From NCBI RefSeq assembly GCF_001194135.2, contig NC_068987.1, positions 36,735,117 through 36,775,092 of the forward strand: DNA of 39,976 nt, given 5' to 3'. The notes under the pieces were generated by a model. It saw nothing but the letters and a program-made list of their open reading frames with translations. It did no database searches and was not told the origin of the DNA. Within the stretch, counting starts at the first letter, position 1, and the number at the start of each line of letters is the position of its first letter. This document shows, piece by piece, positions 35-34,542 of this stretch. Source of the DNA: Octopus bimaculoides (lineage: Eukaryota). The translations under genes were made by a program, and so were the position numbers.

Positions 35-39
<5 letters not shown>

Positions 40-1352: not shown

Positions 1353-1435
1353 CTAATGTTTACAGGCATCAATCGGATTCATTAATGTGAATTTTATACC
1401 CGAAGGCAAAACTCTTTGCTTTAGAGAATCAAGAC
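1353..1435 (-). CDS. Candidate terminal exon of the mucin-Ig-Ig-CBM14 gene: (G)LDSLKQRVLPSGIKFTLMNPIDACKH*
   Basis: Acceptor tcttctag|GT is phase 1, matching the CBM14 exon donor. TAG stop at 1355-1353, with AATAAA on minus at 1343-1338. The polypyrimidine tract is short. Confidence 0.35.
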
Positions 1436-1579
1436 CTAGAAGACTGATTTGTTATTGCGACATCTCAATTTTGTTCACAGAATTTTTTAGTCTGCTTTAC
1501 ATCAACCACGAGTGTGTATAAGCAAGGAGTTATTTTTAATAGGAGTTATTTTTTATGCATATGACTAGGGTATATATAC

Positions 1580-1710
1580 ATATGTGTGTGCGTGTGTGTG
1601 TTTATGTACGTATGTATGTAGGCTTGTATATATGTATGTATGTATGCATGTATGCTTGTATGCATGTATGTATGTATGCATGCATGCATGTATGTATGTA
1701 TGTATGCGTT
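1580..1710. repeat. Compound (TG)n/(TATG)n/(CATG)n microsatellite
   Basis: Visible tandem di- and tetranucleotide units; source of several spurious ORFs. Confidence 0.9.
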
Positions 1711-2635
1711 TGTAGAACAAATGTTTTTAACTACTGGATCCGAAGGACATACAAATTCCTTGACAGACACGCCCAGACTGATGCAAATAAGTTTCCCCTT
1801 GAATAATTGCAATTCAACGCTTGAGAGACGGACATAAGCAGGGAGAGAGTTCAAAAGGATTGATGTTCTTAGAAGAACAGAATGAGCGTAGTGAAATGTC
1901 TCTAGGATGGACAAAGCAAGACGAGCTGTTGAGAAAAATGATATTAGCGGTAGAACAGGTAAAGAGGGAAAACATATCTATGGGCCAAAGGTTGAAATGA
2001 GACTGTGAGTGACGTTATGCTAATCAGCCGGGTATCTCTTTACTGGATGCAGTCTAGGATGTTTGTATGTGCAGCAGCATAGCCTGCTCTTGAGTACATT
2101 GTAGGTCCTAGTTGACCTTCGTAGATGTGAAAGATTGTTTGAAGCTGGAGAGCTTTCTTCATCCTCTAACAATTACTGATTTTCATACATTATTTATATT
2201 TGATAATATCGTTCCTCTACAGTTATGTCTATTGAACACTTTGCCTAGACTCGTCATGGAAATATATATTCGGTGTATTTCGCAAATATTTATACACATA
2301 TGTACTCACGCACGCACACAGGCATATAAATGTAAATGTGTGTGTATGTGTGTGTGTTTGTTTCTATACACGTGTGTTTGCATACGCATTCATATGTGTA
2401 TAAGTTATATTTATAAATAAAATGTATATATATATTATGTAATATATGTGTATACACGCACACACGCATATACACACACATATGTATATATTATAATGTG
2501 AAGCTTTTGTCTCATCTCTTTAACAGTAGCACAAATTCATTGCTTTAACGCAGTCCCTTGTGTATATTTATCTGTTCTTGGTTTTATGTTTGTATTCTTA
2601 TGTCAAATAAAATAATCAGCGATTTGCTCACATAC

Positions 2636-2854
2636 CTTCATATCGTAAAGTTGATTTGTTTTTCTCATATGTTCCAGTTACTGACTTGCTCTGATTGCAG
2701 TCACACATCACACATATTCCGATATCTGCGTCAATGCAATGATGGTCTGGGCAATTTGCGATGTAGCTGTAGTTATTTGCACAATGCACGAACGATTCAC
2801 TACAAGCATCAAACGGGTAGACTTTGAAGATATGCCCATCAGCACAGTAATCTT
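2636..2854 (-). CDS. Exon encoding a chitin-binding type-2 (CBM14/peritrophin-A) domain: (E)DYCADGHIFKVYPFDACSESFVHCANNYSYIANCPDHHCIDADIGICVMCDCNQSKSVTGTYEKNKSTLRYE(G)
   Basis: Acceptor caatttcag|AA and donor GAAG|GTATGT; 219 nt, phase 1-1, open frame. The pattern C..G....P..C..F..C.N......CP.....D...GIC...C matches peritrophin-A. This frame is absent from the ORF track. Confidence 0.85.
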
Positions 2855-2954
2855 CTGAAATTGTAGATATTGTGTCATAAATATTTCTGTTTTTACAATG
2901 GAAATTAAAAGTGACATATATAGATTCTTACATACGTTAGTGCCTAGATAGTTA

Positions 2955-2968
2955 TGTAGCTATGTATA

Positions 2969-3010
<42 letters not shown>
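2955..3010. repeat. (TA)n microsatellite
   Basis: Visible TA run. Confidence 0.9.
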
Positions 3011-3011
<1 letters not shown>

Positions 3012-4947
3012 GCACATATGCGTTTAGATATTTATGTACATATATGTATAACATCAATTGCTTTATCGATCTTTATACATCCTATGTAATATAGAATATT
3101 TTCAATATATTTATCCTAATACTTTCACAGAATTCTTTGTCATAGTTGAAGTTTCATATATTCCAATAGTCTCCAGGGAAGATGGCTTCCCTGATCAAAG
3201 TGATATATTACATTATTAATCGCAATTTTCGCGTCATCTCTTTTAAGTAGAATAAAGACTTGCTTGTTGTCGAATCTGCAGATATATCGGCTTACAAATA
3301 TTAGGTTGGTAGGTCGTATCTCGCCACTGGCGCAGTATCGTATCCACGGATTTATCAGTGTATCTATAAATACACACAATATAGCATAACAAATCATGTT
3401 CAATGCTTGCTTCTATCTCATAGCAAAACTGGAGGGCAATGTTCCATCTTTAAAATCATAGGGGTTACTATATGAATATAATGGCTCCACCAAACTGATT
3501 TTGCGTTGAGATGCTTTACTAAATCTAAGACTTCAAACAGAAATTCTCCAATCTCATGAATTACAGACATTGAAATATATACCTCCGACTTCATTTGACA
3601 ATATTAAATGTCCACACACTGATTGCCTATGCCGTCAGGCGAATCTGGAATTCTTAATTTAACGTTTTCATGAAGCCAAACCGGAATGCTATCACAATGG
3701 ACCTCTAAAATTGTACAGATTCGAATAAGAAGTCTAGAAATAGGTATTCGAGTACTTTCTCTACTGTGAGTTGTCCGGACATAATGCACGTCGACTTTAT
3801 TTACCGATTTGAAAAAAAATGCGTTAGTTAGAACTGGAGAGTATCGAACTAAATATATCTCCAACTTTAATTCTATGCTTTTGATCTTAAGTTCAAACGG
3901 CACTACGGGCGTCTATAGGATTTCGACTCTTTGCAGTCGAAAAAGAAGCAACAGTACACACTGGAATTGATTTGGTCGAGTATACTATCGGACAAGAAAT
4001 ATCTGGCTATGTTCCAAAGGAAGAAATCATTATTTTTCTCTGAATTGGAAATAATAATGCAAAATCGATCCGGACGATGTTACAGGCCGGAAACCCGGAC
4101 ACTGACGCAGGGATAATGGGTGGTTTATTATTTCGATTCCTATTTTAATTCAATCAATATTTCTTTTTCATACAACAATCAATATGTGTCACCTTACTCT
4201 AAAATATTTTTGTTGTTCTCTCCAAATAGATCACGGATGTTTGACAAACGAATTTACTTGATTCTGATCTGTTTTGTATCTCAATCAAATTTGGGTTCAG
4301 AGAAAATACAAACATACACACTCTCATAGAATTAAAAGTATGTACAATGTGATACGTACATTGCTCTTAATGATTATTGTAGGCCAGAATGTATGGCCTG
4401 CATAAAATATATCAATTCTAAGTAAACACTTGATAAACATATGACCATGCCCTTGCTTCTATATCATTTACATATTTGTAATAAATTTCATGTTTATTAC
4501 AATTCTATAAAATTATTTAAATGTTAATTTATGATAGAAACAAAAACCGGAAGAAATATTCTACATCAGCTTTGTTATATGCTGTAATGTCAAATTCCCA
4601 CCGAGGAGGAATACCCCTATCATTCATATAATCTCGATAAAATAAACATCAGCTGTGTACTTGGGTTCGGCTTCATCGATTTCTCTCGTCCCTTTTTATC
4701 CTGTTAGGTTTTTGGTTGCTGTAATTTATTAATAACTACTTGGAGCATTTACAGCATTGATAACTTGCGGTATTTCATTGACGTCCATTGTTAAGTTAAA
4801 ATCATTTCTATGTCCGTAATAGACTAAACTGCTATCCAGTAGAAAACGTTTTTCTCATTCACTGATTATAACAAAACAGGCAGGTTTATGCACTTGTTCG
4901 TTGGAGCCACAAGGACCGTGAAAAGTTTGGCATTTAACATTACTTAT

Positions 4948-5160
4948 GAGCGGTGAGCTGGTAGAAAAGTTAGCATGCCAGGTAAAATGCTTCCCGGCAT
5001 TTCGTCTGTCTTTACATTCTGAGTTCAAATTCTGCCAAGGCTAACTTCGTTTTTAACTCTTTCGAGGCCGATGAAATAGGTACCAGTTGAGTATGAGGTC
5101 GACGTAATCGACTTAACCCACCCTGAAACTGCTGACCTTGTACCAAAATTTGAAAGGAAT
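4948..5160 (+). mobile_element. tRNA-derived SINE, family A (full length, with TSD)
   Basis: Head GCGGTGAGCTGGTAGAA with B-box-like GAGTTCAAATTC, central ..TTTCGAGGCCGATGAAATAGGTACCAG, and 3' ..ACCTTGTACCAAAATTTGAA. 9-bp direct repeat ATTACTTAT at 4939-4947 and 5161-5169. The same sequence recurs elsewhere in the window. Confidence 0.85.
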
Positions 5161-5829
5161 ATTACTTATCAGGTATTAGTAGTGTCTATTTGCCAAAACA
5201 TGAAGGTTCTTATATTTAGAGATAAAAGAAGGAATGATAAGTTGTAACGATTCAGTCATTTCAAAAGAATTACTTAGTAAATTGAATTGATCTGTTAGAT
5301 ATTGATGGTACTTTTCAATCAGAATTAACAAGTGTTAAAAGTTAAATTAAGCATGAGAAGTTGAGGCGAAAATTGAAAGAATAAGTAACAACAAAAACAG
5401 CTCCATTAAGTTTTAACAAATGCAATAAAACAAGTGTGCCATAATAAAGAATTCTAACGTATTGTTTATTTTATTCTTCTTCAAAAAATTATAACTAAAT
5501 TATAATAAAATTTTAACCAAATTGTGCTGCATAACGGGAAGGCTAAGCTAATATTCGATTTTATGAACTTTTCTAAAACAATAATTCGGTTATAATTATA
5601 TTCAGTTAGCTGCTTGAATGATAGTCAAGGTCTTAAATCTCACCGACTAAGTACACGAAGTTAGACATACGTCTGACTTAGGGTAGCTTGTTTTAAACAG
5701 CTGCTATGATAGTAAATTTATATCAATGGATACAAACAGCAGCAAAAAGAAATGAATTTTTAAGAGGCTGCAGAGTTTGCAGCAATTAGTAGAAATACTT
5801 CCAGGATTACAATTTGGAGAAAGACTGAC

Positions 5830-5934
5830 TTCTTCAAATGTAATGACTAAATTTCCTTTGACGAAATCAAAATAATGATATACTGTATTAAATTCACGTC
5901 TCAATTCATTTGATACTGGTTCTGGAGGATATCG
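5830..5934 (-). CDS. Candidate exon RYPPEPVSNELRREFNTVYHYFDFVKGNLVITFEE (phase 0-0)
   Basis: Acceptor tatgtttcag|CGA and donor GAA|GTCAGT; 105 nt open. The phase does not match the phase-1 neighbours, so membership of the gene is uncertain. Confidence 0.3.
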
Positions 5935-6099
5935 CTGAAACATAATTTTATTAATATTTTACTAAATATTTCAAAACTTTTTGCATTTACCACAAAAACA
6001 TGTACATTATGATGTTTCATTATTTTAATGTCTTGCAACTGGGATCTGGTTTCGATTCATGGAGGCACATTTCAAGAAAAATTTAATTATCTTGTATAT

Positions 6100-7232
6100 A
6101 TCTGCAGAGATATGTCTACAAATGGATATCTATTGATGTTAAAACTGCACTCCTCCTGTCTCTTCCATTGACTGTAATACCTGGACAAGCACATCAGCCG
6201 GGTGGTAAATTATGGAGAAAGCCATAATGTGATTACCACCTCTCCCTGATCTTCTGGACATTGCATTTTCACAGCACATTTTTAAGTGAAAATGGATATC
6301 TTGCTTGTAACCTCATCCCACTTCCTGTCCTAAACCAGATCACGAGTCATTTAACCAGTTCATTTGTCCAGTACCATATTGTTCGACGAGACGACATAAA
6401 CTTGTAATTTCACGTTCTGAGCTGTACGCCATCCTGCATGACTCAGTTAAACTTCACTCCTGAATCTACCTCGTATTCGTTTATGCTCCTCGACAGTTTT
6501 AGCGTTTGCAACAATATCTCTAGTGCAAGCACATACAAGAGATGTAACACCCTGACAGGCTGAGCCTGTGACAAGAAATTGTTCCAAGAAGTAGGGTCTC
6601 TGTGAGCAGATACAGCTACTACATAACCTCCTAAAATGGAACGAAACCTGCTGTTTTGACAACAGTAGTTTGGTTCCAATAACATCGTCTTTTTGGATGT
6701 TCCCTTTCAGTAGTGCGACTACGTCCCAGCTCATAAATGTGAATTACCCCGTTCTGTTACCATCTGCAATAGTCGTCTGTCAAGAGATCACTAAATAAGT
6801 TTGACGTGTGACCATAAAAAGGACTAGCCAACAAATGGGTAAGCATCAAAACGGGACATGTTGTCCCTTGTGCAGCCTTTCAGAGCCTTTTGTATCTCAG
6901 TGGCCTTTCGCAGTACTTCATGTCGAGGTGGCACGTTGCTCACCTCAAACAGTCGAAAACTGTTTATACAAAGCTGCACACATCTCCTTAAAACCGAATT
7001 TCACATGCCGTCCCAATCAAAAAAATACCGAATTGTGAAAAGATGCGATGATATTTTCGCTACCCGAACCTAATGAGCAGCTTTGGTATTCGTAAGACTT
7101 TTTAGCGCACAAGCCTTGAATCTATAAATGCGCGCTTTCCTTTTTGCGTTGAAGAAGTGGTCGAGAGCCATTCTTGTCGCTGACACTTTCCTAATCGTCT
7201 CTTCGAGCTGGCTAACTAATTCCCACCCCGAT
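6100..7232 (-). mobile_element. Decayed L1/Tx1-clade non-LTR retrotransposon (ORF2 linker plus RT fragments)
   Basis: Minus-strand peptides: ELVSQLEETIRKVSATRMALDHFFNAKRKAR (Tx1 linker-like); LLYVLALEILLQ (cf. CPLSPLLYVLALEPLL); YEVDSGVKFN (cf. YE..SGAKIN); KWDEVTSKI..EVVITL (cf. W..V..K..GR..V). Contains many stops and frameshifts. Confidence 0.75.
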
Positions 7233-7233
7233 G

Positions 7234-7358
7234 AGAAGAAGAAGAAGAAGAAGAAGAAGAAGAAGAAGAAGAAGAAGAAGAAGAAGAAGAAGAAGAAGAA
7301 GAAGAAGAAGAAGAAGAAGAAGAAGAAGAAGAAGAAGAAGAAGAAGAAGAAGAAGAAG
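7234..7358. repeat. (GAA)n microsatellite
   Basis: Perfect trinucleotide run; produces the poly-K ORF. Confidence 0.97.
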
Positions 7359-7859
7359 GATTAAAATACATTAAAAGCAGAAATGTAAATTGTATACTAA
7401 AGCATGTATTTATAAATCTGAGTAAAATATTCGGATATCATAAACATCAAAATGTTAAATAAAATAAATAACTTGACAAGAGTCGAGGATGGGGAATAGA
7501 GCGGGAAGAGGAGGAATTAGGACAAGATAAAGAATAAGGATTAGTACAATTCAATTTTTCCTAGATTAAGAAGCAGAAATTATAAGAACCGCTGCGCAAA
7601 ACAGTGAATGTAAGAGAGAAACAGATTAAAGACTGCTGTTTCCCTACCTGATATTCAGTTCAAGTTCTACTCCATTTCAATCTTTGATCTCTTGATTCAT
7701 CCCTATTTGTTCCAAGTGTACCCGGAATTCTTTTGTTCATGCAACATTCTTCGTCACATTTGTATCTCTTTGCGACATTTGTCAATAGCAAGCTAGCATC
7801 GGCGCTTGCAAACATAATAAAATGTACGCCCATGCATTCACGCACCAAGAGTAAGGGAC

Positions 7860-7879
7860 TGACAGACAGACAGACAGAC

Positions 7880-7954
<75 letters not shown>

Positions 7955-7970
7955 CAGATAGATAGATAGA
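7860..7970. repeat. (GACA)n/(GATA)n microsatellite
   Basis: Visible tetranucleotide arrays. Confidence 0.95.
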
Positions 7971-8003
7971 AAAGTAGAGGAATAGTCTAAGAATTATACG
8001 TAC

Positions 8004-8324
8004 CCGGTATTAATTTCAATTCGTGTTCGTTAGTAAAAAAGGTTTTGTAGTTTGAGGTGATATTCACCGCGCAGCGAATTATCGATAAGTTGAAAGAAGT
8101 AGGGAATTTGACAGCAAATCGGTAGTGACTTTTATAAAAACATCCATCTTTTTGAATATCTGTATACACTGAAGTTTTATACTCGCTGAAGTTGGTTAAT
8201 AAAATCGGTCGTTTTTCTAGCCAAACAGCTGACGGTTTGGCTCCAATAATGAAACACTCGATATCAGTCTGCCAGTTTGCTGATATTCCTTTCTTATGTC
8301 TTAATATGGCTGTTTTCGGAGGAA
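8004..8324 (-). CDS. Exon encoding Ig-like domain 2 (C2/CD80-like): (V)PPKTAILRHKKGISANWQTDIECFIIGAKPSAVW...FNLSIIRCAVNITSNYKTFFTNEHELKLIP
   Basis: Acceptor aatgttccag|TT and donor CCGG|GTACGT; 321 nt, phase 1-1. B-strand Cys (IEC) is followed by GAKPSAVW, with the F-strand Cys (IRCAVN) after 60 intervening residues. The VPP start is typical of Ig-Ig junctions. Confidence 0.85.
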
Positions 8325-9674
8325 CTGGAACATTAATATATAACAAAAAATAATCATATTTCAATAAGGATTTCTTATATTTGAATAATACAGCACATTT
8401 GTTATAGAGTAGAGGTTAAAACTGACTAAAAACGAATATATCATAGAACAAATGTTTATTTTGTCGAACATTCTGTGGAATGTCAGGATAACAAGCTTTC
8501 TTGGGCGAGAGACTGTGATTGTTTTGCTGTTAACATATGTTAATTATTTACTTCTAGAAAATGGGCATTCCTATGCCGATATGAAATATGAAGAGGAGAA
8601 AGAACTTTGATTACTAGTGAACCAAAATTGCAGACGGGACTCCTGTAGAATTCATGAGACTTTTCATTGTAAACCCTCATGGGATTTCACTCAGAAACAG
8701 TGAAGCCAATGCTCTTCTGAGGTCAATGAGGAGCAAAACAATTTCTCTCATTTACAGACTTAATTGTGATAATATTAGTAGTTAAGCTTATATAGTATTT
8801 CCTCACACTAATTGAAAATACAATTTTCATCCGTTATCTCTTTCTTCCATCTCTCCCGTTGTTGATAGATTACTTGAAAATGTCATGATAGTACTCTTTA
8901 GCTTCCTATTAAGCCATTAGAGAAAAGGGGTTACTTGGAAAAGATGGAGCTTTGAATAAAACACCAAAACAGAAGTTTTATTTGGTTTTCTAAGTCGTGA
9001 ATTCAAGTCAAATTTTGAATTCCTGCTGCAGTCTTATTTCACCGATATCTAAATTCATCCTCATGTTAACATTTTATATCGGCTGAAGAATACATATCCT
9101 GTGATGAAAAAACACTAAGTTTATGGTGAATATTGTGCATTTGTAGAAGTGAAAAATTAGCATATCTATCAAAACGGTTAGTCACCATTAGCAAGAAAAA
9201 CAAAAGGTATGTTAGTGTAAACGTAATGAGTATTAAAATCTGACCAATTTAGTGTTTCGTTATTATTTCGACATATACTTCGAAGCCTATATTTCGATTT
9301 TTAGGGTTAAAAACATCTCATCATATACAGAGTTGCCATGCATGCTAACCGAAATTATATGTCATTTACTTCATCGGTGCATAATTATTTCTCCTTTACT
9401 TTCCAGCTTCACTACATTGTATACGTTAACACTAACTTAACTATTATTTGTTTATGCAGCTGATGTCTCTAAGTAATTAATCTATATTTTACAAACATTT
9501 CAGGGTGGAGAGCCAGAATTGCAAAATCAAATACAATTCTTTTAGTTATGTTCTTTTACAACATAATTCTTATATTTTATATTGAGGCATTGATTGAATG
9601 CCAATTAAGTATTGGGTTTCATTTAATAGAATCGACCCTTTCCGATATAATATGACTATGGCCTAAACACGAAA

Positions 9675-9820
9675 GATTTCAAGTTCCGCCGATGTCTACT
9701 TTGTCTTTCATCCACTTGGGTCAATAAAATAAGCACCAACTGAGCAATAAGGTTGATGTAATCGACTAGCTTCCCTCCCCACAAAACTTCTGGCCTTGTT
9801 CTTATGGTAGAAAGAGTTAT
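9675..9820 (+). mobile_element. SINE family A, 5'-truncated and diverged copy
   Basis: TTCCGCCGATGTCTACTTTGTCTTTCATCC..GGGTCAATAAAATAAGCACCA..GATGTAATCGACT..CTGGCCTTGT aligns to the other copies. Confidence 0.8.
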
Positions 9821-10461
9821 GAATCAGCAACATTAATTTCTAAAATTAGCACAAGGACACGTATTTGAGAACAGAATGTTCGCCTAAAAAGATCCCAGTA
9901 CTAGACAGATATACTAATTTAAAGACACCTCTCTCGAGAAAGATTTAACGTACAATTGATCTGAGTACGATTTGATCTCAGATCATAAAAATATTTATGT
10001 TGGTTTTGTAAACAGACTATGACTTGGAGCTGGAAAGACGTATTTTAACAATTTGTACGGCTCTCGTTTCAAAAAATAAAACCCTTTCGAATAATCACGT
10101 ATCTATAAGGTTCATCTTTAGCTTTATGAGTATTATCACATAGGACTAAATAGTTGCAATTATTACAACCCTGAAGGGTTTTATATCATGGTTGAATATA
10201 TATAATTATATTCAATTCAATAACCTATGTTCTATAATGTGGTAAATAAAGGTTCCTCTGGGGCAATAATTGATAAATTATATTACAAAAGAGGCTATTC
10301 TGTATATTTAGATATGACGGAAAGAGATTGAGAATATTCTTGGCTTCACTTCAGTTGAATGAGTCCCGAAAACATTGAAATCGTGACGCTAAGCATATGA
10401 AATACGTACCATCTCTCTAAAGATAATTTCCATACGTGTTGTCTTCATTTGTGCTCATTAC

Positions 10462-10473
10462 CATATACACACA

Positions 10474-10512
<39 letters not shown>

Positions 10513-10673
10513 ACACACACACACTCACGCACACACTCACGCACACACATACACACACACACTCACGCACACGCGCACACACACACACACTCAGGCACAT
10601 ACACATACACACACACACANNNNNNNNNNNNNNNNNNNNNNNNNNCGCACACACACACACACAAACACACACG

Positions 10674-10740
<67 letters not shown>
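10462..10740. repeat. (CA)n/(TA)n microsatellite with N gap (10620-10645)
   Basis: Visible runs; source of the His-Thr and Val-Cys ORFs. Confidence 0.95.
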
Positions 10741-10811
10741 TAAACAAAATTAGATAACAAAGCCAAAGCTGTGAGGAGTTTCCGGGACATTTATAAGGAA
10801 AAAATATAGAT

Positions 10812-10865
10812 ATAGTCTTAAAGCTGTTTCTGGGATATTAGGGATATCTCTTCATCAGAAACGAT
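10812..10865 (-). ncRNA. Degenerate type-I hammerhead-ribozyme-like motif (left arm)
   Basis: Minus strand reads gtttCTGATGA-agagatatccctaatatccca-GAAA-CAGCTTTA-agac. The core boxes are intact. Helix III would be the palindrome ACAGCTGT but carries one substitution, and the helix II closing pair is mismatched. Confidence 0.4.
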
Positions 10866-11139
10866 GTGAGAAGGTTAAATAGAGGTAAATATTTGAGTTC
10901 GAAATAAAGAATTATTATGGAAAAGGAGATAGGGGGGAATATAGAGGGAAATAAGAGAATGAAAGTAGAAATAAAAATATAAAATATTATATAAAGATAA
11001 AAATATATCTTTATATATTCTGCATTTTTATTTCTACTTTCATTCTCTTATTTCCCGTTATATTCCCTATCTCCTCCTTTTCCATAATAATTATTTATTT
11101 TGAACTCAAATATTTACCTCTATTTAACCATCTCACATC

Positions 11140-11190
11140 ATCTCTGATGAAGGGATATCCTTAATATCCCAGGAACAGCTATAATACTAT
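11140..11190 (+). ncRNA. Degenerate type-I hammerhead-ribozyme-like motif (right arm)
   Basis: CTGATGA (11144-11150)-A-GGGATAT-cctta-ATATCCC-A-GGAA-CAGCTATA. There is a perfect 7-bp stem, but the GAAA box and helix III are mutated. Confidence 0.35.
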
Positions 11191-11263
11191 ATCTATATCT
11201 TTTTTCTTATAAGTGTCCTGAAAACTCCTCACAGCCTTGGCTTTGTTATCTAATTTTTTTTTA

Positions 11264-11265
<2 letters not shown>

Positions 11266-11322
<57 letters not shown>

Positions 11323-11347
11323 CAAACACACACATATATATATATAT
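11266..11347. repeat. (CA)n/(TA)n microsatellite
   Basis: Visible runs flanking the foldback. Confidence 0.95.
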
Positions 11348-19700: not shown

Positions 19701-19824
19701 CTAACTGAGATCTTCCCCAATGTTCTATGCTGTCTGAGGAAAATAAAGTCAGTGTTGTGCACTGTAGAGAAGGTGTGATTTGTTGGTACAGGTAAATAGC
19801 GAACTGATTCGATAACAGAAAGTC

Positions 19825-20928: not shown

Positions 20929-23293
20929 TTGAGAAAAAGTCAATTCATGTCAATAAGGACAAACGGAAACTGTTTGATCTATGCCAAGAACAAGGTTAAA
21001 ATTCCTCAAGAGCACGGCATACTTTGCTTCCTCCATTGGTAAGAAAAACATCGCCTACAACTAACAGAAGATATGGCAGGTAGTGATGTGCAGATCTGTC
21101 TAGTGTCCCCAGAATGATGCATACAAAGTTTTCAGCATCTGTGATAGTCTTAGAAATATAACGAAAGTATTGTCGTTCCATCTCATATCTTTCCACAGGG
21201 TCATGGAATCAATGTTTTTGGCAACGTGAGTTGCTGGAGACAATTGTTAAGCTGTGGATGGATGAAGTAGAAAGCCATATAGAAAGCCATACGTTCAACA
21301 AGATCTTCTCACAAAGCCCATGTAACCTAAGACTGGATGTAAGACAATTTTTACGATTACCATACTTGTGACCTCCAAACTCGCAAGATTCATATCCTAT
21401 GGACTACTACATTTAGAGAGTTGCTGAAAGGGATACTAATTGATTTCTTCACTATACCATAACTTCACTGAAAAACCATCACTATCCAGGTGATGCCTGA
21501 AATGAATGAGGACTATTCAGTGCAGGAATGTCATCGAAACTGAAGGTGGATTCATGAAATAATGTTAAAAGAAAACTTATTGAGAACATATCTACAACTT
21601 TTATTTAAAAAACATACATTTAGTTTTTGCTATATTAGAGTTGTTTTTATGAAATTACCAAATATATTCTCAAATGTTTCTCGCATACTGTATATACGCC
21701 GGTTGCGAGCAGAGGTTAGGGTTAGGATTAAACCGTATTCAGTTAATCGAAATCAAGTGGGGAATCCGTTATGAGATAAGTGTTAGTTCGCCGTATAATT
21801 TGAGAATAAAAATTATTCCACAGATAACAATATCCAATTCATTTGACGTTTATCACAAATTTTCCAATGAACAAAAGATACGGGTTTGTTTCTCCAACAA
21901 GGAAATTCCATTATATTTATACAGAAGTTACTGTTTACCAACCTATTCTAAATTATAAATTTATATACATATGGAATTATCTATTCTTTAATCATGTATT
22001 ATTAGAAATACAGCTACCTTGCAGTGTTAACCTTTATTAAAGCGACTTCCTTATACTCCTGTTAGTCATTTAGCCTGTTCCAAAATGGTCAAAATAAGTA
22101 TAATGAAGAGGCTGCTAGTCAGGAAGATGAGACGACGAACATTCGAGTTAACTGGGTTCTGATTAGTTGGTATTGAATTTATGGTAAAATACCGATTAAG
22201 CAAAGTAGTGTACAAGGAGAGTCTATCACCGTCCACCTGTATGAATATTCATAACACATTAAAGTAAAACGAAAGCGTGAAATGCAGCTACTACCTTTTA
22301 TGTTCTGTTTGGAACAATTAAGTTTCGAAATTAGTAGGGTCTTTCAAAACATTCCTGGTATTATATTGGCTAATTTTAACTCAGGTTACTTAAGTCGCAA
22401 CGACTTAAGTAACCTGTTGTTATTCTTTCTTTGAACTCCAAAGCAGCTGGTTGTATTTCCAGTATATAACAATACAGTTTGCATTACATAACACTACCGA
22501 TGTTATTTCTATTACATAACAATAATGGTTGCTTCTATTGCATAATGATACTGTTTTTTTCTATTATATAACAACATTGATGTTTACAATATATTGCAAA
22601 ATATTGTTACTTCTGTTGTTTCTAGAACATAACAATGTTGTTATTTTTTTCTCATTCGTTATCCCTGGAAAGCAAATTTTTGGATGGATGACTGGAAATA
22701 GTTTCGATTCGGTATTTGGATACTGATGTTGTTGTAGATATTGTTATTGTAGTTCTTGTTTAGCTATCACAACTGCCCAGTTCGATTTGCCGAGTCGGGG
22801 GAATGGCATATAAAATAAAGGTGGGTTAATTGTGTCTACAGACACTCGTAATCTGGCTGAAATGTTTTTGATAATAAGTTAGTCCAGATAAGGATGTGAT
22901 TTGAGTGATGCTAATCAACAATAACCACAACAATAATAATAGTTTACTTGTATCATACAGTAGTCAGTTCTATCTCGCCTTACTAACCTTACTACCCAAC
23001 TTTTACCTAAGTTAACTAAGATATTGACGTTAGAGATGATGAGATAAACAGCTCACATTTACAGCTGCTAAACAAACTACTTTAATATAAAATCTGGACA
23101 CTGAGGAAACTTATTATGATCTGCAATTGGCTACAATTTATGAATCTGCAAGAGGCTTCATAGAACAATTGAAAAAATTCCTGTGTAGAGAAGCATAGAG
23201 TAACTATTCTGGTCACATGTAAGTGAATGCAATATATCTACCATTTGCGTTTATTTAGAGGGAAGGGCGGTACCCAAAACCGTATATTTATTT

Positions 23294-23430
23294 AGAGTCT
23301 CAGAGACAGGCAGGTGAAAAAGAACAGGTTATCTGCAAAGAGAAAACATGGCCAGAGTCTCCGAGACGAGCAGAATGAATGGAAAAAACTATCTGCAAAG
23401 AGAAAACATGACCAGAATTTAGCAGAATGA
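23294..23430. repeat. ~60-bp imperfect tandem repeat (~2.3 units)
   Basis: TATCTGCAAAGAGAAAACATGRCCAGA at 23330-23356 and 23390-23416; AGAGTCTCMGAGAC at 23294 and 23354. Confidence 0.8.
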
Positions 23431-24331
23431 CCATCGTTAAAGGAACCAAAGGAAAAAGGCGCTCAAGCCGGGTGCACATTAGGTTTACCAAATTATTTAT
23501 ATAGGAATCTTTGTTGGAGGAGGTCACCTTCAAATTGTACAAAAATACTTATTGACAGATAGTTGTACCTCAATATATTACAGCATGTTTTCCACTGTCT
23601 CCTTAGGCAAGTTTCTTTTACTCTTCGCGCTTAATTAACTAATTCTACATTAGTACTGTTGTTTTCATAAACTGTATCGGCCGAACACATACACTATCAC
23701 TGATACAGACGTGTCCCAGAGCATAATACGTCAATATACTTGTATGAAGCTTCAATCTTAATTACGAAATGATTAAATTAAAAATAGGGTTGTTGGTAAT
23801 CAATTCGTGTTGTTCTATTAAATTTTATTTGAGTAGCTTCCACCGAACGCATTGCATTTTATTTATTTCTGTTTGAACAACTTTGAGGTTTAAGGTCTAT
23901 ATATGAAGGCGCTATCTCATATATGTGTGTGTTTATATGCGTATATATGTGTGTGTGCGTGTGTGCATATATATGTGTGTGTGTGTGTGCGTGTGCGTAC
24001 ACATTCTCACAGACTTACACAACTCACGTGTCACTGCCACAATATCTCCTCCACAAACATGCGAAACAATAAACACACAGTGCCATACGCGAATTACTAA
24101 TGCATATGTCAGATAGATGCATACATTTATATTGCACACACACCTATACATACAACGGTCAACCTATACATACACATACACACACATGAATCTGGAGAAT
24201 CTACAAGAATAGATGCAAGCGCTAATTTATAAAAACATGTGACATATTAATAAACATCTGTAAATGTACGATCATCCAGATATCTGAGTACTTTATTATT
24301 TTTTCTAATATATATATACATACATATATAT

Positions 24332-24969
24332 NNNNNNNNNNNNNNNNNNNNNNNNNNNNNNNNNNNNNNNNNNNNNNNNNNNNNNNNNNNNNNNNNNNNN
24401 NNNNNNNNNNNNNNNNNNNNNNNNNNNNNNNNNNNNNNNNNNNNNNNNNNNNNNNNNNNNNNNNNNNNNNNNNNNNNNNNNNNNNNNNNNNNNNNNNNNN
24501 NNNNNNNNNNNNNNNNNNNNNNNNNNNNNNNNNNNNNNNNNNNNNNNNNNNNNNNNNNNNNNNNNNNNNNNNNNNNNNNNNNNNNNNNNNNNNNNNNNNN
24601 NNNNNNNNNNNNNNNNNNNNNNNNNNNNNNNNNNNNNNNNNNNNNNNNNNNNNNNNNNNNNNNNNNNNNNNNNNNNNNNNNNNNNNNNNNNNNNNNNNNN
24701 NNNNNNNNNNNNNNNNNNNNNNNNNNNNNNNNNNNNNNNNNNNNNNNNNNNNNNNNNNNNNNNNNNNNNNNNNNNNNNNNNNNNNNNNNNNNNNNNNNNN
24801 NNNNNNNNNNNNNNNNNNNNNNNNNNNNNNNNNNNNNNNNNNNNNNNNNNNNNNNNNNNNNNNNNNNNNNNNNNNNNNNNNNNNNNNNNNNNNNNNNNNN
24901 NNNNNNNNNNNNNNNNNNNNNNNNNNNNNNNNNNNNNNNNNNNNNNNNNNNNNNNNNNNNNNNNNNNNN
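24332..24969. other. Assembly gap (N). Other gaps: 10620-10645, 27572-27957, 28563-28572, 29366-29448, 32312-32337
   Basis: Runs of N, each bordered by microsatellite; they could hide exons. Confidence 1.
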
Positions 24970-25016
<47 letters not shown>

Positions 25017-25149
25017 CATGCTCAAAATATTCACACGGAAACATATACATGGATATATGTATGTACATGATTATGTGTATGTGTGTATGTGCATACACAT
25101 TTTATCACTGACGGATAGTTTTGGTTCCATCAACTAAGTAGTTACACCA

Positions 25150-26070
25150 GTCAACCTAGTTCGATATAGTACTGTTCTAGTGGCGTGAGTTGCACTTTAG
25201 TGGAGATCATTCTTAGGCAGTGCAGAGCGTTCACTCTACCGACATCTATGTAGCAGAATATATTTCAGGTCGTCATGAAATATCATCAGCAATAGCGGAA
25301 TATGGACGGTGGAAAGAATTTAACAGTGCTTTCTATGTGCTGCTTCTATGATTTCTGCAACAGATGAACTGCTTGCCTAACCAAACCTTGAAGAACACTT
25401 CATTTGTGAGTTATACAGAACTGGGTGACTTTGACAACATTTTTTCATATTAGATACGTTGGTGTTGACTAATACAGGTTGAAGAGCATGGGCAACCACG
25501 CTGCTTTAGAGTACATTCTGAAAGCGCTTGTCCATTAATACATGATATAGATAACCAAGTCTAAGGTAGATCTGACTCTATGGAAATCACACTGCTGGTC
25601 AGTAAGAACGGAAAGAAATTTAACGTGACATAGTATATTTTCCATTACCTTCATAGCTGTTGAGGATAAGGAGAGGAATGTAGTTATCGGGTTTCGGTTG
25701 ATTGTCATAATTGGCAATTATACCGAGATGTATTTCATTGAGTTATATGATTTAAGTGGGACATGCACTTAGCAGATGTGTACAAGCAATGGAGAAATAG
25801 ACTAATTATAGAGAACTAGTTGGAAGGAATGTTGGTTTAGTGGATCGTGTTAATGTGGAAACAAAACACACATTAATGAGGTAAATTTATTTGTGGGAGT
25901 GCACGTTACAGTCACCAAGACTGGGGAATGACGTTTTGATGTAATTTGTAATTTTGGATGGTAAAAATACTGCCTTGTGTTATTTACGTGTACTTTTTGT
26001 GCGACAATCTAGATGACCAAGGCATGGATTTTAAGAGTCCAGTTGAGAGGCAGGTGGACGTAAAGCATCT
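25150..26070 (-). mobile_element. Highly decayed CR1/L2-type LINE (APE and RT remnants)
   Basis: Minus-strand peptides GDCNVH (APE GDFN.H), RNPITTFLSLSSTAMKVME and LTDQQCDFHRVRSTLDL (cf. YRPISLL..KVME, LSD.QYGFR..RST.DL), and AIADDIS (YADD). Confidence 0.65.
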
Positions 26071-27488
26071 AGTGGTTTAGAATTTTTCTATTTTATAAAG
26101 TATGCGTAAATAAATACTGTTTAGGAGACTGGGAGAGGTTACATGTGAAGTACATTTAGAACAAGAAATAGAACTGGCAGAACACTAACCATTTAACTCT
26201 CTCAACGTACCGTATATACATAGTCTGTCTATTTGTTGCACATTTACACATAGAACTGATAATGCAGTTTGGGCTACTGCTTTTGAACAGAAAAAAATCA
26301 CTTAATCAACGTTTATAGCTCTCAAGTGTGGTTACCCAAACGATCTATTTAAAACAGGCTAAACGAATCGTATAGATCGTCACCATAAAGCGGCTGGAAT
26401 CTTTTCAAGATATCCACCTCCGATAGCGAATTTTGGACATTATATCTGATCGCTTATGACATATTGCAGAGGGCTTCAGTGTCGGGAATTTCTTTCATTG
26501 CGAATATCTACAGTTACGTTACTATTTAAAATATAAAGTAGTATGTTAAAGAATTAGATTTTCACCAAAGCGCTCGTTTCTCGCCGTTGAGTTTTTTAAC
26601 TTATTGTGACAGAGATATCGAATTTTCAATTTCTCGATCAAACTAATAAGATGTGGATGAAAACGACTTTTGAAAATGCTCACCATTTGTCTCGCATAAT
26701 TTCTTTCAGTGCCGAGTATTATTGTTTCTCAGAATAGGACTTTCTTGGAGGAGGGGGATTTCCTAAGCAAACATTTGGGTAGATTTCGACAGGTACTTGC
26801 TAGCTGTTGGTGTATAGACTATATTAAGTGTGATTGCTGTAGAAGTATCAGATCTGGGAGGTGTAATAAAATAGTTAAATAAGTAGTTGAATTGCTAACA
26901 TTTATGCTAAGGTAGCAAATATCTTATTAGAGCCAAGGAATTACTTGTATGGTTGTATGGAAGATTAAACCAAGTTACATTCCTTTGTCTGTTTTACATG
27001 GCTGTGGGGTTGCTGGAGACTTTTCTAAATAAACTACATTATCGCCGAGGCTTTCTTAGTAATTGCGATGATACAGCAGAGACTCTTCTATTCCAACCAC
27101 AAGGTTCCTAATTATAGCCATTGAGTGGTTGGAAGTTTTATGGAATGTTCACTTTCGGCGTCTTTTGGTGATAGACTATTCTTATTTTTAAGCTAGTGTT
27201 TTGTTTTTTTTTTGCAAAGGTAACTCTCATTGTATGAAAGTTATCAGTTATATTCAAATCAAAATATATAGATATCTATTTTAGAAGCTTTCCAAATCTG
27301 TCTTTAATGTAATAATTCATACTGAAAGAGATAATCGCCCCATTGTATGCAGAATTATTGGTGCTGCAGTTTAGTAGCACTGCAAGTGACGAATGAAATA
27401 CTGAGCATCAGACACCTCAGTTCTACCACAGCTCACTATAGCCCTACAACAGTTCTATCACAGCTCTACATTATCTCTACTACAGCTT

Positions 27489-27571
<83 letters not shown>

Positions 27572-28572
27572 NNNNNNNNNNNNNNNNNNNNNNNNNNNNN
27601 NNNNNNNNNNNNNNNNNNNNNNNNNNNNNNNNNNNNNNNNNNNNNNNNNNNNNNNNNNNNNNNNNNNNNNNNNNNNNNNNNNNNNNNNNNNNNNNNNNNN
27701 NNNNNNNNNNNNNNNNNNNNNNNNNNNNNNNNNNNNNNNNNNNNNNNNNNNNNNNNNNNNNNNNNNNNNNNNNNNNNNNNNNNNNNNNNNNNNNNNNNNN
27801 NNNNNNNNNNNNNNNNNNNNNNNNNNNNNNNNNNNNNNNNNNNNNNNNNNNNNNNNNNNNNNNNNNNNNNNNNNNNNNNNNNNNNNNNNNNNNNNNNNNN
27901 NNNNNNNNNNNNNNNNNNNNNNNNNNNNNNNNNNNNNNNNNNNNNNNNNNNNNNNNNATATATATATATATATATAAGTTTCTGAGTTCTGTAAAGAGAT
28001 AGACACGTATAAACTAATACAGAAGTATCGAGAAAAGAGTGAAGATAAGTAACATACATATAGAGACATAGACACAGACGCACACATATGCCCATATCAA
28101 ATAACCATGGACAAATACACACAAATATATGTATATGTGTGTCCTAACTATATGTATAATAGAGAGTGGCTATTAGGTTCGGAACGTTTCGTCAATATTT
28201 TCCTCCAAAGAAATTTAATTACAAACCAAGCCACTTTATAATGAGATAGTTTTGCCGTTCGTGCTATTTGTTATGGAGAAGGACAATATTTCTCTGTAAA
28301 CAGTTCAATAGTTTGTTTTGTTTTGTCTTGTGATTTTGTCATTTTTTGTTTTTTGTTTTTTCATTTCTCGTTCAATATATATTTTTTTAACCCTTTTTAA
28401 TAGCTAACAGTATCACGTTCTATATATAAATGTCTGATTAGCAACGTTATTTCACGCAAAAACACACAGAGACTTACAAATATACAGAAACGTATATAAA
28501 CACTTATATTTATCGATATGTGTGTGTTTGTGCATCTCCGAATATATGTGTGTATCCATTTANNNNNNNNNN

Positions 28573-28611
<39 letters not shown>

Positions 28612-29448
28612 CATATATTTTATATAAAATTGGATGTATTAAAATTGCAAGCATTTATATATTGTGTGTGTATATGTGGTTATGTGTGTATATATGTTAC
28701 GTATGTTTGTGCATGTTTAATTAATATGTATGTTCGTATGTCTGTCTACAAGTTTTTAATTGTGTATGAATACTGATGGCTTTATCGCGCGTCAACTTCA
28801 GGTGTATGATTACCAACTAAAATATAATATTATGCTGATATGTGATCATAAACATATATAGACACACTATGGTGGGGAGAGGCCTTGAGTAAGATAGATA
28901 GTGAGAGAAAGAAAATTATTAATAGTCGGAAGAAAATTGAATAAAAAAAGAGAGCTTGAGAGAGGAATACAGAATATGATACAGAGTGTATATCAGATTG
29001 TCATAAGAGATGAGTTCAAAATTTTAAATGATTCATAGATGGATTGGTAGATAGGAAACAAAGGTATGCGTATGGAAATGTTAATGTTTTTAATGTGTTT
29101 AAGCATATTTGGAAATACAATCACGTGTTTTTTTATATTTCGGAGTTACAATTATTTACCAAAAGACAATGACCACATTAAAATTGTACAATTGACATTC
29201 TTCATGAAGATTTGTGCATTCACAGTTGGTGAAGATCCCTTACGTTGTTGTTGGTTGTTGTTTTTTAAGCTTAGATAATGCTTAAATATCGGTGTGTAGT
29301 TTTGGGTGGTTCTGTGGCATATACGTGTATGTGTGTGTATGCGTCAGTATTTATATATGTATATANNNNNNNNNNNNNNNNNNNNNNNNNNNNNNNNNNN
29401 NNNNNNNNNNNNNNNNNNNNNNNNNNNNNNNNNNNNNNNNNNNNNNNN

Positions 29449-29507
<59 letters not shown>

Positions 29508-29789
29508 TTTGAAGTGATGTAAATATATTGTATATTTAGAATAAAAAGGTAGTCAGAATGCTGGATGATTATATGTATTTTTCATTTGCATTATATTTAC
29601 ATTTTTAGCGCTTTCTTCCGTTATCGGTTTTTGTATTGGTATGGTCACACTTGTTTGTTTAGTACGTAATGGCCTTTTAAAGTGGGGAAGGAAAAAGAAT
29701 TTTTGTATTTGAATTGGTCAAGGCTTTAACTGAAAAACCACATATTGTTTTCGACTTTCTTCAGTAAAAATTATAATTACATTTCCAGG

Positions 29790-29792
29790 TCT

Positions 29793-29871
<79 letters not shown>

Positions 29872-29900
29872 TGCATACTTTTATTTCTGAATGTATATAG

Positions 29901-29936
<36 letters not shown>

Positions 29937-30050
29937 TTGTATATATGTATGCATGTATGTATGCATGTATGTGCGTGTGTGTGTGTGTGTGTGTTTGCGT
30001 GCGTGCGTGCGTGCGTGTGTGCGTGCGTGCGTGCGTGTACGTATGTGTAT
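29790..30050. repeat. Compound (GATA)n/(TG)n/(TATG)n/(TGCG)n microsatellite
   Basis: Visible arrays immediately downstream of the mucin exon. Confidence 0.95.
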
Positions 30051-30072
30051 GATGAGAAAATTATTTACCTAC

Positions 30073-32085
30073 TTGGTGAAACATCAGTTGTGGTAAGAAC
30101 CGGCTCCGTTGTCGTTAATGAAATATCCGTCATCGACTGCGATTGAACCAGTGTGTGTTCTGTATATATGTTTTCGGTAACAGGAGTGGTCTGTGGTTTC
30201 AGGCTTCCAGAAGTAATTATAGGTGTTGAGTTATAGGCTTCCGTGTTGATTGTATCAGAGGTAACAAAATTTAAAGTTGAACCTGAAGCCAGGTATGATA
30301 TTGTATTAGATACTGTGGATACTTCTTTGACGTTATCATATGTTGTACTGACAATATCAGGTGTTGTTACCAGTGTATAAGGTGGAGTGTCTTTCGGTGT
30401 AACAATAATGTATGTAGTAGAATCTGTTGTTTCTGTAGAAAGTGATACATCTTGTGTAGTATTGTGTTTCGTATAATCATGAGTTTGTGACATTGTGATT
30501 TGTGTCGAGTCAGTGATATCTCCAGATGCCGTAAAATCTGGAGTAATGTTGCTCACATCTGGTGTGATGTTGCTAGTATCTCTTACGTCGCTATGCGATG
30601 TCAAATCATGTATAATACTTTGAGTGTTATAGTTAATATCAAGTGTTGTGATATCTCTCTCTTTCATATCAACCGTCGTAATATCTTCGATATTAGTTAT
30701 AGAATTCACCGTTGGTCGTGAGGTATCGTACATGGTTAAACGTTCATCAGGTGTTGTAAGGTCGGAAGTGAACATTATGTCAGCTTGGCTGGTTGTTTCT
30801 GGTTTATTCTTGTCAGTAGGAAGCAGAAAATCAGCCGTTTGGACTGTTGTGGGCGAAACTGGAATTTCTTCAGTATTAGTTACATCAAAATTTGTGAGAT
30901 CGTTCGTGGTAAATATCGATCCTGGTGTAAATAATTCATCATCAAGTGTCTGCATACTGGTTACTGAGGTTTCTGTAATGTCCTTATAATCTGTGTTGAA
31001 AGTTGATGGTTTATTGATAATGTCAGGTGAAAATTTTTCTGTCATTTCTGTAAAGGCTATCGTTGAAATCTCTGAATTTTTAACATTTTTATTTGTATCA
31101 GTGAGATAATCTTCAGTTTTGTAATTTTCAGATGTCAACGGCTTAGTTATTATCATGTTATTTAATTCAGTTATTTCCGTCGACCTAGAAAAATCTTGAG
31201 CAAGACTACTGTCTGTTAAAGATGTCCAGCCTGACACGAACAGCGGCGAGTTTTCTCTCACTGTACTCACATCAATGTCATCATCCCCAGCAAGTTCAGA
31301 ACCAAAGTATGATATTGTCACAAGTGTGAACATGGAATTATCAGATACCATGTCGTTATTATTGTTCGTGTTGTAAATGTTATTGGTACTAGTTTCTGAA
31401 ATTCCATCATATTCTGGGTTTTGCGATAGTTCGGCTACGTTTGTCTGTCTTTCAGAAGAAATCAATGGAGTGACGTCAGCAATATCCCTTGTGTTTGTAA
31501 ACGATGTCAAATTTTGTGCTGTGTTTTGTGACGAATAATCAATGCCAGTTGTTGTGATGCTCATTATCAGTGACGTATTTCCAGATGTAGTTACATCGAC
31601 GACTTCTGATGTTGTGCTTTCATACAAAACAGACAGAAGAGTGTTGTCGTTTTCAGTAACAATATTTGATGGAGTATAACTATCTGTAGAAAAAACCTCA
31701 TTTGATTGAGTAACATTTGATACCGGTAGTGAAACTCCTGAATGAATTTCTTCATGTGATGTTAATTTACTTGTGAATGAATGATCTGAAAATGAGAGCG
31801 TATTCCCATTAATATCATTCGTAGTTATATCATTATTTGTCATCTCATTTACTCCCGGGGTTACCATTTTAAGAGAACTTTTCTCAACGGTCGATTGTTG
31901 AATATTATCCAGTGTAGATAATTGCATGACTTTAGTATTAATCAATGTCTGTGTTACTTTGTATATGGGCTGAACTTGCGTTGATGTGCCTCCATCTAGC
32001 TGACCCTGTGATGTCAGTTTGGCAACAGTTGAAGATTTCGTTTCTAGGAACTGGGAACTTGGACTATCTGATGGATTAGCAGTCT
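30073..32085 (-). CDS. Large mucin-like (Ser/Thr/Asp-rich, Cys-free) exon, ~671 codons, starting xETANPSDSPSSQFLETKSS...
   Basis: Open frame of >2 kb in repeat-rich DNA. Acceptor ttttttgtcttctttcag|AG at 32085 is phase 1, and the frame is open 140 nt upstream of the ORF-track start. Donor is either CCAA|GTAGGT (30073, phase 1, in frame with the Ig1 exon) or AG|GTAAAT (30069, phase 2). Confidence 0.9.
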
Positions 32086-34540: not shown

Positions 34541-34542
34541 AT

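Follow-up and report, generated by a model that had tools for sequence, protein, structure and literature searches.

The question raised by this locus is whether an octopus genome holds a counterpart of the VCBPs of Branchiostoma and Ciona, extracellular-side proteins in which two immunoglobulin (Ig)-type domains are followed by a chitin-binding domain (PMC4757023, PMC2632668). The window, which herein means the whole stretch of 39,976 nucleotides from Octopus bimaculoides contig NC_068987.1, carries on its minus strand four exons for a Ser/Thr-rich stalk, two Ig-like domains and a CBM14 module. In a sequence-only reading, these exons had been taken as a hidden gene for a secreted VCBP-like protein. 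The comparisons described below indicate that they are the central part of an annotated gene of a molluscan family, that the full protein would be anchored in the membrane, and that its likeness to the VCBPs probably lies in domain composition.

The four minus-strand stretches are open in the predicted frame, and each has an AG acceptor with a pyrimidine tract and a GT donor (splice points are marked by a slash). Exon 1 (E1, 30073..32085) has 2013 nucleotides, or 671 codons, with the acceptor TTTCAG/AG at 32086/32085 and the donor CCAA/GTAGGT at 30073/30072, and encodes the stalk, which is rich in Ser, Thr, Asn and Asp. Exon 2 (E2, 15791..16114, 324 nucleotides, acceptor TTGTAG/, donor ATAG/GTAAGG) encodes the first Ig-like domain (Ig1), and exon 3 (E3, 8004..8324, 321 nucleotides, acceptor TTCCAG/, donor CCGG/GTACGT) encodes the second (Ig2). 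Exon 4 (E4, 2636..2854, 219 nucleotides, acceptor TTTCAG/, donor GAAG/GTATGT) encodes the first CBM14, or peritrophin-A, module with eight Cys. Each length is divisible by three, and the junctions are all in phase 1, with every exon running from phase 1 to phase 1. Across the three junctions, the spliced frame gives TTDVSP-T-LNLMQDG, KTFTII-V-PPKTA and LKLIP-E-DYCADG. E1 lies within an open frame of 679 codons, three times as long as any other in the window. The G+C content of the window is 35% and stop codons are common (about 7% per random codon); therefore, a frame of this length cannot be due to chance.

A protein search with E1 as the query matched XP_036360733.1 of Octopus sinensis and CAI9725906.1 of Octopus vulgaris. 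XP_036360733.1 is 'uncharacterized protein LOC118764280 isoform X2', a protein of 1091 amino acids that was matched at E 2.9e-260 with 87% identity to E1. By tblastn, its residues 218-737, 728-845, 846-955 and 951-1025 correspond to E1, E2, E3 and E4 at 87, 81, 92 and 99% identity, respectively. The E1-E4 junctions are carried by this RefSeq protein in identical form (TTDVSPTLTLMQDG, KTFTIIVPPKTA and LKLIPEDYCADG), and the four exons with good splice sites that had been proposed to join in frame at phase 1 are thus verified. The O. sinensis and O. vulgaris genes are orthologues of the window gene and share its exons, their junctions and their order. Where the stalk can be aligned, protein identity to both species is about 88%, and the identity of the introns to O. 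vulgaris is about 84-93%. The window species, which had been read as a probable cephalopod, is an Octopus close to, yet distinct from, O. vulgaris and O. sinensis. The gene is not hidden, since LOC118764280 is annotated in O. sinensis with four RefSeq isoforms (XP_036360732-35, named 'uncharacterized protein / PB18E9.04c-like') and is partly annotated in O. vulgaris. Nothing was found in the literature on LOC118764280 or on cephalopod proteins with Ig and chitin-binding domains. The present standing of the gene is that of an annotated, unstudied orthologue, and the result is a corrected gene model with a testable hypothesis rather than a discovery.

The four exons are spread over three different contigs of the scaffold. 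Intron 1 (16115..30072, minus strand) has a length of 14 kb and contains the assembly gaps 24332-24969, 27572-27957, 28563-28572 and 29366-29448. Intron 2 (8325..15790, minus strand) contains the gap 10620-10645 within a CA microsatellite, and intron 3 (2855..8003, minus strand) is gap-free and forms one colinear block of 7 kb with 88% identity to O. vulgaris. None of the exons is touched by the runs of N, each of which is flanked by a CA, TA or GT microsatellite. In a blastn comparison with 55 kb of O. vulgaris chromosome OX597820.1, the whole window was colinear and co-oriented (one chain of blocks spanning 39976 to 1), and colinear blocks were found on both sides of every assembly gap. The orthologue protein has no extra residues at the junction peptides. 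Together, the colinearity across the gaps and the lack of extra residues confirm the order, orientation and frame of the exons; the latter also indicates that the gaps conceal no coding exon of the annotated isoforms.

Nucleotide identity and the ratio of nonsynonymous to synonymous substitution rates (dN/dS) were calculated for each exon by comparison with O. vulgaris. The values are 93% and 0.52 for E1, 94% and 0.68 for E2 (from just 18 substitutions), and 95% and 0.29 for E3. E4 is identical at 219/219 nucleotides, without any substitution, and the 600-nucleotide flanks of E4 are 88-92% identical. The exons are conserved above the introns, and the splice sites are kept in O. vulgaris. These values show purifying selection on the gene, strongest at the CBM14 exon.

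The gene extends past both ends of the window, and the window holds its four central exons, those for the stalk, Ig1, Ig2 and the first CBM14. At 2636, E4 ends with the conserved donor ATGAAG/GTATGT and has no stop codon there. This donor is used both in O. sinensis (..RYE/D..) and in O. vulgaris (..RYE/A..), which indicates that the coding sequence does not end at ..YEGM-stop and that E4 is not the terminal exon. Positions 1353-2635 are intron and not a 3' untranslated region; they lie in the start of intron 4 (1..2635, minus strand), with the exon for the second CBM14 beyond the window. By tblastn, residues 1-217 and 1026-1091 of the orthologue had no counterpart in the window. Likewise, tblastn found the exons for the transmembrane and SEA part and for the second CBM14 neither in the window nor in the 55-kb O. 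vulgaris locus, which reaches 10 kb past each end of the O. vulgaris gene model, and in the 14 kb downstream of E4 in O. vulgaris no second CBM14 exon was found. In that species, these exons are located more than 10 kb from E1 and E4.

The missing ends were examined in the O. sinensis orthologue. Its N-terminus consists of a 66-residue tail and then one hydrophobic segment, CLLGMIIAFVAVVTVTAITLSVFL, at about residues 67-99, with K and R before it. This is the sole hydrophobic segment of the protein, and there is no N-terminal signal peptide. The earlier statement that no transmembrane segment is present is true of the window only. Isoforms X1, X2 and X4 keep the 66-residue tail ahead of the hydrophobic segment, and the predicted isoform X3 begins at Met74, right at the segment. 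A SEA-like region is located at residues 107-180 (Pfam SEA, E 1.4e-5, 25.6 bits) and contains NGSVVINF. After the E4 part, the C-terminus adds a second cysteine-rich module (..CTHYVYCYGESEHVIACPNGYFYNY..). No recognised signalling domain was found by a Pfam scan of the cytoplasmic tail. The full protein is inferred to cross the membrane once as a type II glycoprotein, with an intracellular tail and with the part from the SEA-like domain onward outside. From the N- to the C-terminus it would comprise a short cytoplasmic stretch, a transmembrane segment that acts as a signal anchor, a SEA-like domain (GSVVI) next to the membrane, the stalk, and a distal head of Ig-Ig-CBM14-CBM14. The Ser/Thr-rich stalk has 520-670 residues and is presumably O-glycosylated.

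The composition of the stalk is 19% T and 13% S (32% S+T) with 4.5% P. The stalk is therefore Ser/Thr-rich as first described, yet proline is just 4.5% and no tandem repeats were found in it; it is mucin-like, and not a classical mucin of the proline-, threonine- and serine-rich type. The stalk of the window species is 153 codons longer than that of the orthologues. An in-frame stalk segment of 153 codons in exon 1 (about 31615-32068, minus strand) is absent from the O. vulgaris genome and from the O. sinensis protein. Isoform X1 of O. sinensis has a 25-residue tandem duplication and a 7-residue insertion, neither of which is present in the window. The length of the stalk thus evolves fast while the frame is kept.

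In Ig1, the B-strand Cys is found in IICQG and the F-strand motif LTFSSDTCSVSKQFSC is in register. The octopus sequence alone has no Pfam Ig match. It aligns with the position-equivalent Crepidula domains, which are scored by Pfam as V-set (8.9e-10) and Ig_3 (4.7e-10). An extra Cys specific to this family is located eight residues before the F-strand Cys, in the octopus LTFSSDTCSVSKQFSC and the Crepidula LTFTNVTCGDVGDYVC. With a joint profile of Ig1, 113 PDB chains were matched at E<=1, and the 60 listed are all members of the Ig superfamily, with titin at 2.8e-8; these strong scores are partly carried by the Crepidula rows. In Ig2, IECFIIGAKPSAVW has a Cys and then a Trp (Cys-x12-Trp), the F-strand Cys is found in SIIRCAVN, and the spacing between the two Cys is about 60 residues. 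Ig2 has no Pfam match and no V-set match. A profile of Ig2 from six family members found only Ig domains in the PDB at E<=10, namely four chains aligned near end-to-end with weak scores of 0.021-1.4 (Fab V-lambda at 0.021, SYG-1 D1 at 0.27). In single-sequence searches, the PDB matches to DCC and Roughest (E 0.3-1) cross the Ig1-Ig2 junction. An exact substring of the O. sinensis protein was used as the query for AlphaFold and for the searches of representative proteins. The AlphaFold models are all-beta at Ig2, yet the predicted local distance difference test score (pLDDT) is below 55 there.

CBM14 is the peritrophin-A chitin-binding fold. When E4 was compared alone with Pfam CBM_14 (PF01607), the scores were 14.6-16.4 bits (E 0.011-0.038), under the gathering score of 22.1. 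When the orthologue C-terminus with both modules was compared, scores of 22.9-25.2 bits were obtained over two stretches, above the same cut-off of 22.1. A lamprey protein in which Pfam finds 12 CBM_14 repeats was also matched (E 3.7e-8), and the part equivalent to E4 gave the strongest stretch of that alignment. The six-Cys framework C1-x13-C2-x6-C3-x9-C4-x12-C5-x2/4-C6 is present in E4 together with two extra Cys. CPDHHCID replaces the usual CPxGLxF(N/D), with the aromatic residue after CP missing. The second CBM14 module, which is seen in the orthologue beyond the window, keeps the canonical aromatic motif CPNGYFYNY. Within the proposed architecture of a stalk, two Ig domains and CBM14, Ig1 is thus supported by the family profile and CBM14 by the pair of modules that passes the Pfam cut-off, and Ig2, with its weak matches, is probable.

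Relatives outside the octopuses were searched for exhaustively with HMMER among 1.84 billion representative proteins. Four proteins were matched at E<=0.001: the source protein of the query, a Crepidula and a Pinctada homologue, and the lamprey multi-CBM14 protein. The E-values among these 1.84 billion proteins were 1.3e-5 for Crepidula fornicata UTK45853.1 and 1.5e-4 for Pinctada imbricata KAK3095387.1. The alignments of 112-212 residues cover the end of Ig1, Ig2 and CBM14, and the motif (L/V)IP-x-DYC-x-DG..K-x-(Y/H)P(F/Y)(D/E)-x-C..FV-x-CAN is shared by the three molluscs. UTK45853.1 is protein 163501 of the Crepidula shell-matrix proteome of Batzel et al. 2022 (PMC9365450, Table S1), where it was scored as having a transmembrane segment and no signal peptide and was classed as extracellular matrix-binding. 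It is listed in the supplementary table only and is not taken up in the main text of any of the Crepidula papers. The view that no molluscan equivalent had been described does not hold, because this homologue sits in a shell proteome; a molluscan Ig and CBM14 protein is already recorded, though unstudied.

The layout of the Crepidula protein is an N-terminal tail, a transmembrane segment, a Ser/Thr linker and [Ig-Ig-CBM14-CBM14][Ig-Ig][Ig-Ig-CBM14]. Both the octopus orthologue and the Crepidula protein have one hydrophobic segment with K/R before it and no signal peptide, and in both a Ser/Thr stretch follows the transmembrane segment. The homologous Ig-Ig-CBM14(-CBM14) module and the DYC-x-DG motif are common to octopus, Crepidula and Pinctada, at an identity of only 20-28%. 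The Crepidula protein differs in that the module occurs three times, the cytoplasmic N-terminus is long and Pro/Gly-rich, the Ser/Thr linker is short and no SEA match is found; the octopus, for its part, has no calcified shell. These similarities place the octopus gene in a mollusc-wide family of membrane-anchored Ig and CBM14 proteins of the Crepidula 163501 type. What is new is the SEA-like domain with a long stalk in a shell-less cephalopod, and the family itself is barely known.

At the Ig2-CBM14 junction, residues 475-532 of UTK45853.1 scored 25.6 bits against Pfam PF20032, the 'ADYC domain', with a cut-off of 27. The motif at this junction is ADYC in Crepidula and EDYC in octopus, and the octopus proteins fall below the PF20032 model. 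A literature search on PF20032 'ADYC domain' found no paper. A word-indexed protein search was also performed. With the spliced exons 2-4 it gave no match, despite an about 90% identical protein in the database, and with the family alignment it found only a genomic open reading frame of a further octopod and missed three known members. Because known relatives were missed, the negatives of this word-indexed search are not evidence of absence.

How far the protein resembles a VCBP can now be stated. The VCBPs are secreted, have the form V-V-CBD and are free of a stalk, whereas the octopus protein has a type II membrane anchor, a SEA-like domain, a stalk that exceeds 500 residues, a second Ig that is not of V type, and two CBM14 modules. 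There is no cleaved leader in X1, X2 and X4, which start with the 66-residue tail; only the predicted X3 starts at the hydrophobic segment. Nor does the protein consist of two V-type Ig domains and one chitin-binding domain alone, since the stalk, the SEA-like domain and the two CBM14 are added. A secreted VCBP-like protein is not what the orthologue describes, with its hydrophobic segment after a 66-residue tail and no signal peptide. No VCBP was among the four proteins at E<=0.001 in the 1.84 billion representatives, and no entry named VCBP was among the listed PDB matches of the single-sequence, Ig1-profile and Ig2-profile searches. The gene had been suggested to be convergent with or deeply homologous to the VCBPs. 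Convergence agrees with a likeness in composition only, and deep homology is not supported by the search. The likeness would most simply be explained by convergent shuffling of phase-1 exons.

Two other known systems share parts of this architecture. In the SEA membrane mucins and the type II SEA-stem proteins, a juxtamembrane SEA-like domain with G-SVV(I/V) is located next to the transmembrane segment, as in the orthologue; in MUC1 and matriptase-type proteins, G/SVVV is the motif at which SEA cleaves itself. A Ser/Thr-rich stalk is common to the octopus protein and the mucins, and the type II orientation is common to the octopus protein and the protease family (matriptase, HAT, enteropeptidase). 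However, MUC1-type mucins are type I proteins with Pro-rich tandem repeats, neither of which applies to the octopus protein, and the type II SEA proteins carry a protease head and not Ig and CBM14. The peritrophins and the intestinal mucins of invertebrates likewise pair Ser/Thr-rich regions with peritrophin-A modules, but they are secreted proteins, mostly with many CBM14 repeats, and lack both Ig domains and a membrane anchor.

The function that we favor, with modest confidence, is that of a sheddable, type II Ig-Ig-CBM14 tether or organiser of the chitin matrix on an epithelial surface. The protein would be placed on the apical surface of a chitin-secreting epithelium, such as that of the beak or radular sac, the sucker lining, the foregut cuticle or the stylet sac. 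The stalk would keep the head distant from the membrane, the CBM14 pair would grip nascent chitin fibrils, and the Ig pair would bind matrix or neighbouring proteins. SEA autoproteolysis would then release the ectodomain into the matrix, and SEA-mediated shedding could explain how a transmembrane member of the family ends up in the proteome of a snail shell. Self-cleavage of SEA, O-glycosylation of the stalk and chitin binding by CBM14 are suggested by what is known of these families.

Several results weigh against the sheddable tether. The transmembrane segment, the SEA-like domain and the second CBM14 are known from the O. sinensis model only, and the hydrophobic segment of isoform X3 could serve as a signal sequence, which leaves room for a secreted form. 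The SEA score of 25.6 bits is 0.8 bit under the Pfam cut-off of 26.4, and a comparison of the SEA-like region with PDB sequences gave no SEA match. The support for Ig2 as an Ig domain is weak, and no similarity was found by hhalign between the Ig2 and Ig1 profiles (probability 0.7%). Both AlphaFold models are unreliable, with a pLDDT of 34 for the single-sequence AlphaFold2 model and 38 for the model from a 9-row alignment, and Foldseek gave no PDB match at E<=0.001 with an unreliable query model. In addition, the first CBM14 is divergent, with extra Cys and no aromatic residue, and may not bind chitin itself.

Other explanations of the locus were weighed against the tether. That chance open frames or a decayed pseudogene were stitched together by scaffolding across gaps has a negligible probability. 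Taken one by one, the three short exons do not exceed some chance open reading frames of this AT-rich window in length, and the exons lie on three contigs of the scaffold; such an artefact is nevertheless ruled out by the 679-codon frame, junctions identical to those of the annotated orthologue, conserved splice sites, colinearity with a chromosome-level assembly, dN/dS values below 1 with an invariant exon 4, and homologues in a gastropod and a bivalve. It is also quite improbable, though less so, that the protein is a cell-surface adhesion or signalling receptor, in which the Ig pair would make contacts with other cells or with a ligand and the CBM14-like modules would be mere disulfide-rich spacers that have lost chitin binding. 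The best PDB matches are adhesion and guidance members of the Ig superfamily (DCC, Roughest, SYG-1, titin, Robo and contactin), the orthologue has a transmembrane segment and a 66-residue cytoplasmic tail, and the first CBM14 is atypical, all of which would suit a receptor. However, these matches are to the generic Ig fold, at E 0.02-1 for the octopus sequences, and there is no orthology to nephrin, CADM or DCC. A transmembrane exon together with orthology to a nephrin/CADM-type receptor had been named as grounds against the VCBP-like reading; a transmembrane segment was found in the orthologue, and such orthology was not. The type II orientation, the SEA-like domain and the long stalk are unlike those of Ig-superfamily receptors, the canonical CPNGYFYNY is kept in the second CBM14, and the cytoplasmic tail has no recognised signalling domain.

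A mucosal immune effector like the VCBPs is a more serious competitor, although still an unlikely one. In such an effector, the head would be shed by SEA cleavage or made as a secreted isoform, CBM14 would fix it to the chitin-rich mucus of the gut and the Ig domains would bind microbes. The combination of Ig-Ig with a chitin-binding domain resembles the VCBPs (PMC4757023), a secreted form could arise from isoform X3, which opens with the hydrophobic segment, and the Crepidula counterparts of Ig1 match the Pfam V-set. Ig1 also has the highest dN/dS of the exons, at 0.68, a value from only 18 substitutions. However, in the main isoforms a signal anchor takes the place of a signal peptide, CBM14 occurs twice instead of once, the second Ig is not V-type, and neither the four proteins at E<=0.001 in 1.84 billion nor the listed PDB matches include a VCBP. 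The only homologue with an experimental context is a shell-matrix protein, and the exon of the first CBM14 does not vary between the species, contrary to what a hyperpolymorphic immune gene would show.

A wider proposal builds on the tether and is speculative. Molluscs may have a conserved and so far unrecognised class of type II tethered, sheddable Ig-Ig-CBM14 proteins that link the apical membrane of epithelia secreting chitin to the chitin scaffold, and the octopus member may have been redeployed as a functional analogue of the VCBPs that arose through convergent shuffling of exons. In shelled species, such proteins would be left in the shell matrix, and the octopus would have gained a SEA release switch and a long glycosylated stalk. 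The protein would then act at a chitinous cuticle or a chitin-rich mucosa, where the Ig pair would also meet microbes. If the tether is correct, the family would be a physical link of epithelial cells to chitin scaffolds in molluscs. The way in which the secreting surface of the shell, beak, radula, sucker lining and gut cuticle holds and patterns chitin fibrils is poorly understood, and the octopus member would show the role of a shell-matrix family in an animal whose shell has been lost. A combination of Ig and chitin-binding domains that is independent of the protochordate VCBPs would bear on the origin of Ig-based mucosal immunity.

Further features of the locus were observed. Intron 2 contains a conserved alternative terminal exon (15152..15303, minus strand, acceptor TTTTCAG/GA), the counterpart of the O. 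sinensis isoform X4 tail, with 77% identity and E 2.5e-17 by tblastn. Its use would yield a truncated protein of the stalk and Ig1, without Ig2 or CBM14. A Pfam scan of this exon gave no match. The O. vulgaris model CAI9725906.1 omits the Ig1 exon, starts inside exon 1 and has a different last exon. In the O. vulgaris genome, exon 2 is intact, open and 94% identical (29300-29623 of the 55-kb OX597820.1 stretch). The skipping of Ig1 in the model is probably an annotation error, or else a frame-preserving exon-skipping isoform.

Around exon 4, a block of 454 nucleotides (2474-2927, minus strand) has perfect identity with O. vulgaris and reaches 73 nucleotides into the upstream intron and 162 nucleotides into the downstream intron. 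About 45 differences are expected in such a block at roughly 10% divergence. The frozen synonymous and intronic sites suggest a constraint beyond the protein, for example splicing control or RNA editing. The RNA fold of the block is no more stable than that of shuffled sequence (z = +1.57), and a double-stranded editing or regulatory structure within it is therefore unsupported.

Remnants of mobile elements were found outside the exons. A decayed transposase remnant like those of Tc1/mariner/IS630 is located in intron 1 (about 19800-20600, plus strand; HTH_Tnp_IS630 at E 0.0026, sub-threshold). Upstream of exon 1, a decayed reverse-transcriptase fragment with a YMDDL motif (34059-34733, minus strand; RVT_1 at E 1.2e-4, below the cut-off) is broken by a long ATT-type microsatellite. 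CA, TA and CTAT microsatellites are numerous across the window, and one adjoins every assembly gap. A/T homopolymer tracts of about 130-150 nucleotides are present at 7150-7360 and 35080-35250.

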